A program made the position numbers and the translations under genes. The notes under the pieces are model-generated. The model made no database searches and had not been told where the DNA came from. It saw nothing but the letters and a program-made list of their open reading frames with translations. A DNA stretch of 64,000 nucleotides from Bugula neritina (taxonomy: Eukaryota > Animalia > Bryozoa), in assembly GCA_964035545.1 (NCBI GenBank), contig OZ037765.1, positions 3,348,001 through 3,412,000 of the forward strand. Direction: 5' to 3'. Positions 345 through 64,000 of the stretch are shown one piece after another (the first letter of the stretch is position 1; each line of letters opens with the position of its first letter).

Positions 345-865
345 CAGCACAGTCTGGTCTAACAGAGTATCTCCACTGACTATCAGAACTACTAATAGTA
401 CCAGTCTGAGTATTCTCTGCTAACAGTTGACAGTTTCCATTATCAGTTCTGTAGTTTATTGAGGCACATATGAATGATGTCTGCTGCATACACTGAGCTC
501 TACACTCATCTTCACTGGTTACAGAGAGAGTCTTTATTCTACCGGATGTTATGTAAGGATCTAGTCTACCTACACCTGATGTCCAGTCACAGGTTAATCC
601 TAAAAACATGAATAGAAAAAGCAGATTATCATACTTGTTCTAACTACTATAAATAGTGATGGTGACTAATTTTAAAACACTTTTTATGAAAACTTGAGCT
701 GCTTACATAAATTAAACATGGGTAGAAAGAGTATATCATTAATTTGTAGCTTTGAGGTTAAACACTATGTTATGCTATATAACATACCTTGTACTGGTGT
801 AGAGTTAGACACAGTAAATATAGAAAGAACCACAACTGAAAACACAAGTGTAGTATTCTGTTCAT
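345..865 (-). pseudogene. Receptor family copy Z, 5' part only (signal exon 788-865, PAN/apple exon 345-599); the rest lies beyond the window start; apparently frameshifted
   Basis: Exon 2 is 255 nt with AG/GT ends, like all other copies (CDWTSG...[18 protein letters not shown]...C...RPDCA). Exon 1 is 78 nt versus 76 or 79 in intact copies (TA duplication near 818-822), so splicing reads AAG GAT TAA. Confidence 0.7.
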
Positions 866-2002
866 TTTAATACTATATGCTTAGTATAACGTCTATACAC
901 TGAGATAGTATTTATTAAAGTGACTTGCATTAAGGAGGTATAAATACATGAATATTTCTAGAATAGTCATCTAGTGTTAGCATAATTTTGACATCATGGT
1001 AGGCAGCTGATTTCAATAAAATGAGCAAGTTCACAAGGTCAACAACCACGGCAGCTATGAAAAGAAATTGTGGTAAAGGCTCATAGGTTTTCATTTTACT
1101 TTATACACCTGTTGGCGGTAATAAATTTTAGAACAGTACATTTTTCAATCATAATTTTTAAATACAATGAAATTTAAAAATCAAAGAATTCTATTCAAAT
1201 ATATTTAAAAAAGTTGCTTTTCTTATAACTGCATTTGCTATAGACGGATTTTTGTATTATTGTTATTATTATTATTCCTTTACACATGGTGGTTGGAATC
1301 CTTATCATAATAAAAGCTGACAGCTGACGGCCTAATAAAATAATGAAAACACAACTGAAATATAATTGACACTTTAAATTCATTTAATTTTGAAGTTGCC
1401 TCTCATTTATATATATAAATGATAGTAATTCAAGGCAGATTTTACAGGTCAAGTAATGATCAGCTTTTAGCTATAAAAAGAGTAATTGCTTTCACATTAG
1501 ATATTAAACAATGAAACAATTTCACCTTAGTTTGTTCAGCTGTTTTTTCAATAATGACAGTTGCAAACTGCCTGGAGCTGCATGTATTGAAATGTAAGAC
1601 TTTCATATGTAAGTTGAAATGCAGCCACCCAGTAGATATAACTATACGTAGTTTACTTATATTTGTGTTGCATTGTTGTTGGAATTACACAGAACACAAA
1701 TTATTTAGCTTAGAATAATGATGTCAGATTTTTTGAATAAATATACTGCAAACACAAAAGATTATGTTTATCAATATAGAAACATAACAGAAGCAAAATT
1801 ACTCAACACATGTATTTATTTATTGATTGCTTATATCACTTTTTTAATAAACTATTTAATTCAAAGTAAGCCATATATTGGTTAACTGGTAACTGCATTA
1901 CTATAATATTAATTTAGTTTATCAATGCAATAAATGCAACAAACAAAATAATAAATACTCAGTTTTTTAATAATGGTGACCTCTCTGTTTAGAGCTGTTG
2001 AT

Positions 2003-2008
2003 AAAAAA
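2003..2008 (-). terminator. RNA polymerase III terminator (T6) of tRNA-Tyr
   Basis: TTTTTT on the minus strand, 3 nt after the tRNA discriminator base. Confidence 0.75.
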
Positions 2009-2011
2009 TGA

Positions 2012-59896: not shown

Positions 59897-59985
59897 ATCA
59901 CAATAAGAATAACCACTAAGTATAATGATGATGAAACCCATTGAAACATCAACTGCTACTACATCCATGCACCCAGCTTGCTTCT
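59897..59985 (-). pseudogene. Relic TM exon cut off by the LINE fragment
   Basis: VAVDVSMGFIIIIL resembles VAVGVPMGFIIIIL. It is frameshifted and joins the LINE sequence at ~59896. Confidence 0.7.
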
Positions 59986-61405
59986 AAAATAAGAAAATAT
60001 GTATAAATTTTTGCTGGAAAAACTCATTCTGTGAGCAAGTTTTTTTTTTATTGAGAAGCAGTGTTACGGGTTTGCTGCTGCAAGTAATCAAAACCTAAAG
60101 CGTAACATTCGACTAAATATTTCGCTCACCTTCTTTAAGATCGTTATGCATAAAAACCACTTTTTTGCTTCAAAGCACTCAGCTGGCTTCAAATAATAAA
60201 AGCTGCCAAGCTTTTGTGGAGTTGTTAATTATTGCAGCTTCTTGAAAATTAAGTTTTATTTTTTTGGTTCTCACTCTGTGGTCAGCATTACATTGACCTT
60301 CTGACTCTGCTGCCAAAAGTATAGCTGTCTCAATAGTCTACTTATATGAATAATTAAGATACATTTGCCTGTTGTGTTCTCTGTTTATAAGTTGTCTTCT
60401 CTATAAACTGCAAAACTTAATATAAAACTTGCTCAAACGACATTCAACGTTTAATATCTGCTAATAGCTTTGATGATTTTCTACATTTTTTGACTCCTAT
60501 ATAGTATTTGTAAATTGCTAAAAGAAAGCTGCTTCACAGCACTGAGTGTCTGACAAAGTCACACTCTAGTCACCATAATGCATTTATGTCTTCTGAATAA
60601 TGATGATAATAATGATACAGTTCTGTATATTAAAGTTATCAAAAGCAGGGCCAAAATATGATCAACAATGGAATAAGTCAAAGGTTGTGCAACCTCAACA
60701 ACTGTTACAGCTATCTGATTGCTAATTTCTAGCGTAAATACATTGTAGTGCTCTAATGCCAAATGCCAAAGTCATCTTTTATTACAATAAAAATAAACGT
60801 GAGTCATTTTACAGCTCTCACATACGTATTTTATAATTTTATTTTTAATTGATTTTATTATAATAATAATAGAAGTGCTTTACATATTATAGTTAGTATC
60901 GGTAATATGAATAGTTATGTAAACTGCAGGTAGTTGTTATTGAATCATTTTTCCAAAAAAAACAATTTCTAAAGCATATTATAGAGCAACATACATTACA
61001 AATAAATTTAGTCAGAAATATTTTATTCATATTTTGTAATCTAAAAACTAGCAGCTAAAATTATTATGACAAAATTTACTTTAATATAGACAAGAAAATT
61101 TAAACAAATCAAGCAGGAAGCATATTTTTTATAAAACAGTGAAAGTGCAGATATGTAGTTTCAAGCAATTATAGTAAGTACCATATAATAAAACATTTTC
61201 TAAAAGTTAGTTTAATCTAAATCAAGATTAATGGATTTCTTATTTTAATCCAACAGAGACCTAAAGTTATTTCGTTATAAGATCATATAGGTTTAACACA
61301 TTACTATTATAAAATGCACATTTAGGACAATAATTTTTAACATTTAACTTCTAGCATATTAAAAGCTCAGTAAGCAGTAAGAACTGTTTTTGAATTAAGT
61401 TTGTT

Positions 61406-64000
61406 TCAAGCTTTGTTGCTGATTGTTGAAGTATTTTCATAACAGACTGGTTTCATTTGTTTAGTTACTTTCTCATAGACATGATCATCTGATATAGCCT
61501 GAGGATTTGTTATCTCATACTCAGCACTTTCTACTGGTACATCTCCTGCACCACCCTGATTCTTAGAAGATGTAGGTGTCAGCCCCACTTCTTCATATTC
61601 GGGATTAGGTTGAGCTCTATTCTCTTTAGACTCAGTACCAGAAGATCTTCTCACCAACATCACAATAAGACTCACTACTAGTATAATGATGATGAAACCC
61701 ATTGGAACACCAACTGCTACTCCAACCACCCAGCCTGTTGTAAAAACAAAAACATACCAATTATTTCTATAAAATCTATACACATGTCTAGGCTATAAAT
61801 AATTATTGTTGGAAAAAGTTTTTTGTATGTAAAAAATCATTGAGCTAAAAGAATGCTGCTACATATATTCAAAACTAAAACAATGGTTTTAATTTCAAAA
61901 TGTTTAATATTTCACACTTTCCATTTTTGGTAGACAGAGACATACAGTAGAGTGACACATATACATGCAGTAGTCTGACAGATACAGTACACTGACATTG
62001 CATTACAAAGATGGCTGACACATACCTTGAGTTGGTAGTTCACAAATAGGAGGATTGTCAGACCATTCTCCTTTACCATCTACTAATTCACATGTGATGG
62101 CAACAGGACCTTTTCTGATAAAACCCTCTTTACAATCATAATTCAGAGTGGAGCTCAGTTTCCAGCTTTTATCAACAACTGGTGTTTCAAGATTTGTTAC
62201 AGATTGTGGTGTTGAGCATGTGATTGGTTGAACCACTGAAATAAAACAAATTTAAATTTCGGAAACATTTTAAAAAGGTAAAAAGAATAATAGTTTGAGC
62301 TAAGGAAATGTAGTTGCCGGAAATAATGCTGTTATATAAACAGTCACATTGTCTATGCTATCTACATGCGTAATGGATCTCTTTTTCCTAGATGACAACT
62401 TTTCAACAAAAACAACCATAGAGTCATATTCTTTTAGAATATCATCAGATGAATTGATGTTTGGTAAGGGTTTCCTCTGATGGGTTAACTTTATTAAATA
62501 TTATTGCCGTATGTCAACATTGGTTCTAAAATATTAAAGCAATGACTTCATTTACTAGCAACAAGTGACCAAAAATGTTTAAATTACTCGAAACCTTTGG
62601 CTTTATGTTTATTCCAACTCGTTAAGCTTCAAAGTTCAGAGCAGCTTGCATTAAAATTTACCTTTTAAAATTGTGGTGAGCATAAAGTTATCTACCTTCA
62701 GGTTTAGTCCAGAACACAACTTCTCTGGAACTTTCTCCAAACTCATTTCCAGACAGAAGAGCTTTAACTGTACAGCTGTATTCTACTTGACTATAAAGTG
62801 ATTCTATAGTAAGAGAGGTGGTAGAAGAGTCAGATGTTGTATAGTACTTCACTGAGTTCACTGTCACACTATCATTAAAGGTGTTGTTGGTTGTGATGCA
62901 TGTTGCCTGTAGCCAGTAATCAAAACAGTATATAAAGTAAAGATCATTTACTTTTATCTATTTCATATTGTCATGTTTAAAAATGCTCTGTTTAAACAAG
63001 CTGCAAAAAATATGTTAATTTTTCACTTCTGGGTTAATTTAAAACAAATTCAAATGCCAAAGGTATATTGATGTGTAAGAAATGACCGAGAGCTAGCCAG
63101 TTACCAACAAAACTTATAGAGTTGAAAAAGAGAACAAAGTATGTTAAGTGTGCTTGATAACATGCAGAGCATACATAGAAGTGCACCTGAAGAAGTATAG
63201 CAATAAGTTGACTTAAACTCTAAAATTAACAAAATTGAAGTTACGCTGAACTTTTTCCTGTTCTAATTTATACTATACTCACCTGATACTGTTGAATAGA
63301 GTAGATCTTATCTGTATAGACTACAGGAGACCAGGAGATAGTAACTGAAGTAGAAGTTCTGCTGTGAACTGTCAGTTCATTTGGTGAGTTTGGGGCTATA
63401 AAATTGATATTATCGTAAGAAATGATCACTTTTATTACTCAAGAACTTTTTTTGACTATAAAAAATGTCTCAGTGTTGCTAAAATAAGTTTCAAACCAAA
63501 ATTTAGAAAGTTTCAATTTGATCTATATAATATCCATTCTTCAACCCATGACGGCTTCATTGACTATTTATAAACTTTTATTAGATGTAAATCATTTAAA
63601 AACTGCATTTATGTCTTCACTAATATAATCTTCATTATATGGTAACCTAAATCCTAATCTATGTAAGAGAAAAATAAAATATCTGAAACTATTAAAGACC
63701 TATTAACCTTTAAATCTTTAAAACACATAATTATAGAAGCACACATTATATATACACATGTATAAGCCCGCTGGCATGCACATTGCATTCATGCATATTA
63801 TAATATACTTGCAATAGCTTCTACTCACCTTTACTAGTTGTGTATTCTTCTTGCCATATTATATTCTCATGTCCATCTAGTAGTTCTACTATAACAGTCA
63901 GTTCAAATGTCACACCTTGCTGTTTAATGAAATTCCATGGGCCTGTTTTCATCTGATTGGATAATTGTCCACTTCCATAAGTTAATGTAACACTGGATAC
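61406..64000 (-). CDS. Receptor copy F, 3' part (5' end beyond the window); exon 10 is destroyed and probably skipped
   Basis: Exons >64000-63829, 63283-63395, 62696-62906, 62026-62235 and 61406-61734 have normal lengths and AG/GT ends. Exon 9 to exon 11 is phase 1-1, so skipping exon 10 keeps the frame. Confidence 0.75.
61930..61997. repeat. 17-bp minisatellite, about 4 degenerate units, in intron 11 of copy F
   Basis: Short version of the D/E array. Confidence 0.7.
62310..62525 (-). pseudogene. Decayed exon 10 (RPTP-like domain) of copy F
   Basis: Reads EPMLTYGNNI* with an early stop and an internal deletion. The 3' half (GDNQTYGGYWNRPL) and the donor site are missing. Confidence 0.8.

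Follow-up and report, generated by a model that had tools for sequence, protein, structure and literature searches.

Tandem clusters of single-pass receptors that place near-identical ectodomains on alternative signaling parts are familiar from the KIR, LILR, Siglec, and SIRP families. These are immune receptors built of Ig domains, and their clusters carry pseudogenes, gene conversion, and tail truncations; they use immunoreceptor tyrosine-based inhibitory or activation motifs (ITIMs or ITAMs) and a charged transmembrane (TM) residue for adaptor pairing, and their opposing arm is an ITIM that recruits a phosphatase. In the colonial marine invertebrate Hydractinia, Alr1, Alr2, and the Alr-like genes lie together in a large tandem cluster that also contains pseudogenes and encodes diversified single-pass receptors whose tails bear tyrosine motifs; the Alr ectodomains are Ig-like and homophilic, and their role is based on genetics and extreme allelic polymorphism (PMC9546547). 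Another colonial animal, Botryllus, has the Sushi-containing membrane receptors fester and uncle fester. Receptor protein tyrosine phosphatases (RPTPs), in turn, are type I single-pass proteins with a MAM-Ig or Ig head, an FN3 array that in the PTPRM/K/T/U group ends in a juxtamembrane Fn3_PTPRU-type domain, and one or more cytoplasmic PTP catalytic domains with the motif HCX5R. Here we describe a receptor gene array in a 64,000-nucleotide stretch of the bryozoan Bugula neritina (positions 3348001 to 3412000 of contig OZ037765.1, called C1 below, in a 216-Mb assembly; "the window"). It belongs to a real and transcribed receptor family for which we know of no description. Single-pass receptors that combine with alternative signaling parts in a tandem, reshuffling cluster are of a kind already known; this cluster is set apart by an RPTP scaffold, by a head of PAN-PAN-jelly-roll type, and by a phosphatase arm that is fused. 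Seven members of this multigene family lie in the window; the receptors probably bind ligand through a PAN-PAN-X head, with readout by a tyrosine-bearing tail and opposing action of phosphatase paralogues.

The encoded proteins are type I single-pass membrane receptors with the order signal peptide, PAN, PAN, a domain that we call X, FN3 (FN3a), a second FN3-like domain encoded by two exons (S and Y), an optional pair of FN3 (FN3b) and Fn3_PTPRU domains, Sushi, TM segment, and tail, giving two to four FN3-type domains per gene. In stop-to-stop frames, the same protein pieces recur along the minus strand of the window, which is AT-rich (G+C, 27-37%), and a tblastn self-map put them in strict order. 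Together with exon-by-exon mapping of boundaries, this identified five complete and two edge-cut copies of one receptor gene (G1 to G7) and two lone-exon relics, all on the minus strand (Table 1). The distance between copies, from PAN1 to PAN1, is 8.3-14.4 kb, in agreement with a first-pass annotation of this DNA that had described seven same-strand copies of a 9- to 12-exon gene at a spacing of ~8-14 kb. G2 and G3 are short forms of 9 exons, without an Fn3_PTPRU exon, and G4 to G7 are long forms of 12 exons.

Splice sites are conserved, as had also been claimed: every internal exon of G2 to G6 has AG and GT at the homologous position, and in alignments of exon DNA with its flanks, similarity drops or becomes patchy exactly at the AG and the GT. 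Exons are 70-96% identical among copies and introns have only patchy similarity, which excludes chance as the cause of the array. Frames that are open from an ATG to a single terminal stop were found for G2, G4, G5, and G6 (682, 983, 985, and 982 codons, respectively); continuity was checked exon by exon, with split codons carried over the junctions. A short conserved block encodes the start codon and a hydrophobic signal peptide; it lies 250-340 nt upstream of every PAN1 exon and ends in a phase-1 donor. All ectodomain modules, whether of one or two exons, are in phase 1 at both ends, the S+Y and FN3b modules each consisting of two exons with an internal phase-0 intron. Insertion or loss of a whole module thus leaves the frame intact, which explains the 9-exon and 12-exon forms.

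Pfam supported the domain string of the first-pass annotation, with one domain in weaker form. PAN1, with six cysteines in the exon translations, matched PAN_1 (40.8 bits against a cut-off of 21.4; 1.9e-10), the juxtamembrane exon matched Fn3_PTPRU (39.4 bits against 24.7; 9e-10), and the Sushi exon matched Sushi (33.8 bits against 20.7; 4.5e-8); fn3 was also matched in long-form genes. PAN2 scored 18.5 bits (0.0018) with PAN_1, under the gathering cut-off of 21.4, and is called PAN-like only. The model of S and Y together is an FN3-type sandwich (Z of 8.8 and root mean square deviation of 2.3 over 85 residues to fibronectin FN3, at a predicted local distance difference test [pLDDT] of only 68), and with medium confidence we take S+Y to be a second FN3-like domain.

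Domain X had no Pfam match. A profile search of the PDB with an X alignment of 39 sequences (two window paralogues and 37 of the 48 matches that a search of 1.84 billion representatives had yielded) gave nothing meaningful, and Foldseek with the X model against the PDB gave nothing at E of ≤0.001. The alignment-based model is a predicted jelly-roll beta-sandwich of the lectin or carbohydrate-binding module (CBM) type, with a pLDDT of 90.2. Compared with structures by VIA-align, it scored Z of 10.7 with a phage tail-tip protein, 9.3 with a phage capsid decoration protein, 9.1 with the lectin-like domain of Cwp84, and 5-7.5 with CBMs and F-lectins; its TM score was 0.74 with an unannotated sponge protein cluster and about 0.45 with F5/8-C. 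X is thus like the galactose-binding-domain-like jelly rolls (F5/8 type C, CBM32, F-lectin, and Cwp84) in predicted fold (Z of 5-10.7) but unlike them in sequence, since the Pfam and PDB profile searches were empty. Its nearest relatives are unannotated sponge and bryozoan proteins, not the F5/8-C, CBM32, or F-lectin families; relatives were found among bryozoan proteins and sponge protein clusters, with a weak match in a hemichordate, a range drawn from 48 mostly single-exon matches. Conserved open frames of 77-115 codons lie on the plus strand, antisense to each X exon (for example, 40707-40961, 53735-53989, 29479-29823, 15680-15910, and 7847-8098); most simply, they are a by-product of X conservation and not separate genes.

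To count the family, we searched the whole genome with the X, PTP, Sushi, and TM/tail exons; searches used single exons, and contiguous sequence was taken from three public gene models (P0049, P0063, and P0009). The genome has 36 X exons, 35 of them open and one with a stop, and 33 of the 36 lie on C1 at 2.81-4.22 Mb in three blocks. We conclude that the window array lies within a supercluster on C1 that spans 1.4 Mb and comprises at least 33 related receptor genes. To our knowledge, no vertebrate RPTP subfamily comes near ~33 tandem copies, and the present family is far larger. One of the three blocks is a phosphatase sub-cluster ~0.6 Mb from the window: about nine tandem copies of PTP exons lie at C1 3.95-4.23 Mb, each a few kilobases downstream of an X exon, and PAN1 and PAN2 exons lie upstream of these X exons. 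None of the 22 Sushi exons on C1 is in this sub-cluster. Sushi and tyrosine-tail exons are restricted to the other two C1 blocks, except for one copy on C2; TM/tail matches numbered 31 genome-wide, with some genes matched twice. No PTP exon was found in the window by tblastn of P0049:700-1300 (nothing at E of ≤1).

The public B. neritina protein P0049 (KAF6029364.1, named "Ptprm") has the phosphatase-type architecture X-FN3-S/Y-FN3-Fn3_PTPRU-TM-PTP-PTP. Its first PTP domain (D1) has the WPD loop and the motif HCSAGVGRTG, and its second (D2) looks degenerate. Judged by these motifs, the tandem-PTP cytoplasmic part of the paralogues is catalytically plausible; the PTP part most closely resembles PTPRA/E and LAR/S. 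Because about nine paralogues combine the same ectodomain with two PTP domains, the family is RPTP-related. The first-pass annotation had called one FN3 domain RPTP-like; the Fn3_PTPRU match bears this out, but the wording was an understatement, as about nine paralogues are true RPTPs. The family differs from described RPTPs in its PAN-PAN-jelly-roll head, and the seven window copies have no PTP domain but instead a Sushi domain and a short tyrosine-motif tail. A third receptor type, Fn3_PTPRU-stalk-TM-tail without Sushi, is present in P0063. The phosphatase-type ectodomain exons resemble those of G5 as closely as the exons of G5's own neighbors do. Exon trees built for X, Fn3_PTPRU, and PAN1 have a star-like shape, with phosphatase- and tail-type genes intermingled, and hence the ancestral type cannot be named. 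The family looks like a paired-receptor system. More distant X exons, with 35-39% identity, lie on another chromosome (C3:4040607-4041062, 4077633-4078091, and 5352800-5353147), and a dispersed X+Sushi+TM copy (C2:4334786-4339419) has 75% identity in X; these may be older family members and could root the family.

RNA evidence indicated that the family is transcribed and spliced as predicted. Three RNA runs covered predicted exons only (17-20 of 30 bins) and left the long introns without any depth; a DNA run of the same haplotype as the assembly covered all 30 bins. Joints in the predicted places were observed in G5 at 40603/39085 (GT..AG, minus strand) in two runs and at 37307/37142 in three, and loose ends at 38768, 38115, 37417, and 36929 continue into the next predicted exon. 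The richest run gave 50 contigs with at least 99% identity.

The tails carry four conserved tyrosines, in NPEY/YEEV, YETT, HVYEKV, and YEN (80 residues in G5), and the stretch around NPEYEEVGL is constrained (ratio of nonsynonymous to synonymous differences [pN/pS], 0.15-0.3). As had been claimed, there are several tail types: the G2 tail is ended by a TAA at the position of the first tyrosine codon of the other copies, the G3 tail is of a different type, basic and rich in Ser and Arg, and in the relic TM/tail exon, the first tyrosine has become Phe (NLEFEEV) and the distal tail has diverged. A canonical ITIM, [SIVL]xYxx[ILV], was not found in the window tails, whose sites read PEYEEV, AEYETT, HVYEKV, and CYEN and have P, A, H, or V/T at position -2; the CYEN site fails regardless, its +3 position being N or T. 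ITAM spacing (YxxL/I-x6-12-YxxL/I) was likewise absent from the window tails, and no charged TM residue was found in G2 to G7, whose TM segments are all hydrophobic, that of the tail-truncated G2 included. On these points, the comparison with immune receptors in the first-pass annotation needs correction.

Set beside the systems described above, the family is like KIR, LILR, Siglec, and SIRP in genomic layout and in its sets of alternative signaling parts. It differs in using PAN, FN3, and Sushi domains instead of Ig domains, in having its phosphatase fused rather than recruited, and in lacking, in the window copies, both the ITIM/ITAM motifs and the charged TM residue; an immune role of the present family is hypothetical, whereas those receptors are immune. 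The Alr proteins are known from genetic evidence and the present family from sequence, and the likeness is structural only. With fester, there is no sequence relationship; Sushi is here only the membrane-proximal module, several paralogues lack it, and the extensive alternative splicing of fester is without evidence here. The analogy of Alr, KIR, and fester to this locus is structural only.

The closest public proteins are from B. neritina and Watersipora subatra and are named only "Ptprm," "PTPRM," "hypothetical protein," or "uncharacterized protein." Consistent with these automatic names and with the first-pass annotation, which recognized no named family, our literature search found no description of the family; nor did it find a molecular allorecognition system of bryozoans. 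The architecture does match a known family in part, through the RPTP paralogues, but no named family has it in full. A homologue search with the P0049 ectodomain found only two other B. neritina models, and a search with P0009 found only P0009 itself. The model P0063 (EB796_024741; VXIV02003448.1 of GCA_010799875.2, 2565-15533) is one complete tail-type gene fused with the front of the next, and P0049 lacks the two PAN exons, which are annotated as a separate upstream gene. We conclude that the family is mis-annotated in the public assembly, where gene models are fragmented or fused.

Selection on the exons is purifying overall (dN/dS per exon, 0.34-0.77). Within X, the core is strongly constrained (pN/pS, about 0.17), and loop regions at the N- and C-terminal ends are variable, with pN reaching 0.33 and a sliding-window pN/pS of 0.9-1.8; the hypervariable patches of the first-pass annotation are present. 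Among seven independent paralogue pairs, pN/pS in these variable regions was 0.90-1.51 and not significantly above 1 (Fisher p, 0.27-0.76). Positive selection was thus not demonstrable, as the excess in sliding windows was not significant with independent pairs; the patterns point to relaxed or weakly diversifying evolution of the patches rather than proven positive selection. Mosaicism, also claimed, was observed. The best-matching paralogue shifts along a gene, introns included, and in G3, FN3a and Y group with the long forms and Sushi groups with G2, which indicates gene conversion or unequal exchange. Two pairs of X exons ~59 kb apart are nearly identical (C1 3401629 and 3461395 differ by 3.6%; 3414928 and 3473743 differ by 1.6%), which suggests a recent multigene segmental duplication. 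Judged from these sequence comparisons, the array expanded through tandem duplication and through duplication of segments of roughly 59 kb, and its copies have exchanged sequence in a mosaic fashion.

The exon plan is shared with W. subatra XP_067947407.1, which has leader, PAN, PAN, X, FN3, S, and Y through to TM; a further PAN1-like exon lies 9 kb downstream of that gene. Its tail has VSYLEI, which unlike the window tails fits the ITIM pattern, and NHVYEKP. Since HVYEK is common to Watersipora and Bugula-type tails, the tail-type receptor predates the split of these two cheilostome lineages. The other public B. neritina assembly, GCA_010799875.2, is only 72-92% identical to the source assembly in the genes and 71-86% in the orthologous cluster flank. 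Identity is low even in the flank, so GCA_010799875.2 represents a different lineage; we set it aside as an allelic comparator, and it says nothing on polymorphism. A whole-genome DNA search with a contig of that assembly was swamped by transposons.

How such a family would work can be outlined as follows. The PAN-PAN-X head would bind an extracellular protein or glycan ligand, and in tail-type copies, binding would be read out via phosphorylation of the four conserved tail tyrosines. NPxY is a PTB-type site, YEEV an Src-SH2-type site, and YxN a Grb2-SH2-type site; by these specificities, the tail may offer NPxY overlapping YEEV, YxN, and HVYEKV as docking sites. The phosphatase-bearing paralogues would see the same or similar ligands and give the opposite enzymatic output, which would make the whole a paired-receptor system on an RPTP scaffold. 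Candidate processes served are non-self recognition, adhesion, and settlement.

Several observations weigh against this outline. RNA contigs are sparse over the Sushi and TM exons, and where contigs span the Fn3_PTPRU exon, most go on into phosphatase-type sequence, which makes the expression level of the tail type in the window uncertain; conserved exon cores are collapsed across paralogues in the contigs, so expression cannot be assigned to single genes. The putative SH2 and PTB sites are assigned from short motifs and textbook specificities. Part of the array is decaying, and the relics and pseudogene features that the first-pass annotation had seen are indeed there: a 2-nt insertion puts the donor of the G1 leader in the wrong phase, G3 lacks an in-frame ATG in the homologous leader exon (about 18659-18600), the G7 Fn3_PTPRU exon (about 62525-62312) is half deleted and reads into a stop, though the frame is kept if this exon is skipped, and the G2 tail has lost its motifs.

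Of the alternatives to a ligand-binding family with paired outputs in general, the one that survives best is that the cluster serves non-self recognition, as immune pattern recognition or colony allorecognition, and that it evolves by birth and death, its specificity being set by diversity among alleles and paralogues; we regard it as possible but doubtful. It fits a colonial animal from a group for which the searched literature names no molecular allorecognition locus, a large tandem cluster with relics and tail variants, variable surface patches around a conserved jelly-roll core, mosaic copies consistent with gene conversion, and a head built of lectin-like and PAN domains. However, the sole other public assembly is of a different lineage, the variable patches show no significant excess of pN/pS over 1, ITIM, ITAM, and a charged TM residue are all absent from the window copies, and the architecture is derived from or common to RPTPs, which mostly act in adhesion and development.

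Another alternative, which we consider unlikely, is that these receptors act in development or adhesion (for example, in zooid budding, in the response to larval settlement cues, or in adhesion between cells or of cells to matrix), with the expansion reflecting sub-functionalization by tissue or stage instead of recognition of foreign ligands. An FN3-rich ectodomain of RPTP type and the existence of true RPTP paralogues favor it, this being the role of most FN3-rich RPTPs, as do PTP domains closest to adhesion and neural RPTPs, an exon plan conserved in a distant bryozoan, and overall purifying selection. But at least 33 near-identical copies, relics, and rapid turnover would be unusual for developmental receptors, and the variable patches evolve almost neutrally. 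That the array is mostly nonfunctional debris, left by a burst of recent duplications around a small set of functional RPTP genes, is very improbable: the defective G1 and G3 leaders, the broken G7 exon, the truncated G2 tail, the two lone-exon relics, and the weak RNA cover of the Sushi and TM exons speak for it, but four of the five complete genes have intact open reading frames of 682-985 codons, 35 of the 36 X exons genome-wide are open, the X core and the tail motifs are under strong purifying selection, and splice sites are conserved.

Table 1. Receptor gene copies, relics, and other features mapped in the window (window coordinates)
Feature	Position	Strand	Remark
G1, 5' end only	leader 865-788, PAN1 599-345	minus	remainder before window
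G2, short form, 9 exons	10387-5123	minus	intact, 682 codons
G2 exons 1-5	leader 10387-10312, PAN1 10064-9810, PAN2 8957-8688, X 8240-7734, FN3a 6963-6646	minus	
G2 exons 6-9	S 6492-6395, Y 5975-5789, Sushi 5655-5446, TM 5250-5123	minus	
G3, short form, 9 exons	18659-13195	minus	open from PAN1 to stop
G3 exons, PAN1 to FN3a	PAN1 18377-18123, PAN2 17179-16913, X 16052-15555, FN3a 15442-15125	minus	
G3 exons, S to TM/tail	S 14665-14574, Y 14286-14100, Sushi 13885-13655, TM/tail 13460-13195	minus	
Relic, lone PAN1 exon	20976-20696	minus	frameshift: two tblastn high-scoring pairs in different frames
Relic, lone TM/tail exon	22484-22126	minus	
G4, long form, 12 exons	33134-24000	minus	intact, 983 codons
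G4 exons 1-6	leader 33134-33059, PAN1 32803-32549, PAN2 31310-31044, X 29965-29468, FN3a 27817-27500, S 27318-27221	minus	
G4 exons 7-12	Y 26942-26756, FN3b 26241-26129 + 25733-25523, Fn3_PTPRU 25325-24942, Sushi 24777-24568, TM/tail 24334-24000	minus	
G5, long form, 12 exons	45775-35087	minus	intact, 985 codons
G5 exon 1, leader: start codon and signal peptide	45775-45697	minus	phase-1 donor
G5 exon 2, PAN/Apple domain 1, six Cys	45437-45183	minus	PAN_1, 40.8 bits
G5 exon 3, PAN-like domain 2	42488-42219	minus	PAN_1, 18.5 bits, under 21.4 cut-off
G5 exon 4, domain X, 167 codons	41103-40603	minus	donor confirmed by RNA joint 40603/39085
G5 exon 5, FN3a	39085-38768	minus	RNA joint and loose ends
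G5 exon 6 (S), first strands of second FN3-like domain	38573-38476	minus	RNA loose ends 38768, 38115
G5 exon 7 (Y), remainder of second FN3-like domain	38115-37929	minus	
G5 exon 8, FN3b 5' half, long-form genes only	37415-37303	minus	RNA joint 37307/37142
G5 exon 9, FN3b 3' half	37139-36929	minus	
G5 exon 10, juxtamembrane FN3 (Fn3_PTPRU)	36762-36376	minus	phase-1 donor AGAC/GTAGGT (slash marks the exon end)
G5 exon 11, Sushi/CCP	36206-35997	minus	33.8 bits
G5 exon 12, TM helix and 80-residue tail, then stop	35415-35087	minus	
G6, long form, 12 exons	58559-47992	minus	intact, 982 codons
G6 exons 1-6	leader 58559-58484, PAN1 58219-57965, PAN2 57658-57395, X 54131-53628, FN3a 51994-51677, S 51503-51406	minus	
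G6 exons 7-12	Y 51068-50882, FN3b 50425-50313 + 49953-49743, Fn3_PTPRU 49579-49196, Sushi 49035-48826, TM/tail 48320-47992	minus	
G7, 3' part	64000-61406	minus	Y cut by window end, reaches down to 63829
G7 exons	FN3b 63395-63283 + 62906-62696, Sushi 62235-62026, TM/tail 61734-61406	minus	
Reverse-transcriptase open reading frame, 533 codons	55036-56634	plus	RVT_1, 1.2e-32; retrotransposon in the G6 PAN2-to-X intron, not part of G6
tRNA-like gene between G1 and G2	2012-2097	minus	Rfam tRNA, 61.8 bits over 86 nt; anticodon not named by ARAGORN

Other elements are interspersed with the receptor genes. Besides the reverse-transcriptase frame listed in Table 1, broken reverse-transcriptase-like frames lie between G6 and G7 (59133-59983, minus strand), and retrotransposons are accumulating in the cluster. 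A 1.3-kb element (VXIV02003448.1, 11346-12660) has dozens of copies with 91-96% identity on at least eight contigs of the source assembly and is an abundant, recently active transposon common to both B. neritina lineages. The tRNA-like gene, the sole match in the window at the Rfam gathering score, may be interrupted by an intron or may be a repeat of tRNA origin. The Sushi-to-TM introns of G5 (35571-35973) and G6 (48498-48790) hold a 17-nt minisatellite (unit GACACATACAGTAGACT, 17-24 copies), which is unexpanded in G4 and has a few units left in G7; it yields long spurious Cys/Val-rich open frames. Long (TA)n tracts are present at 122-250, 11024-11290, 11556-11692, and 13892-14049. Rfam showed no hammerhead ribozyme in the window at the gathering score, a threshold that minimal hammerheads might escape.

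Bryozoan colonies fuse with or reject their neighbors. A stronger version of the non-self proposal, which we think decidedly unlikely, is that the supercluster is the bryozoan non-self or histocompatibility system: a reshuffled PAN-PAN-lectin-like ectodomain would sit on either a tandem phosphatase or a phosphotyrosine docking tail, and ligand match or mismatch would shift the balance of kinase and phosphatase at colony contacts or on encounter with microbes. If this were true, it would be a recognition principle without a described counterpart elsewhere. The cluster is in any event a concrete and unusually large candidate for recognition genes in bryozoans, for which the searched literature names none. 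Whatever the function of the receptors proves to be, X is an unannotated metazoan jelly-roll domain, and an RPTP ectodomain has been copied onto nonenzymatic tails via phase-1 modules. The family may thus offer an invertebrate parallel to the paired receptors of vertebrates, one in which the phosphatase is not recruited but is part of the receptor itself.

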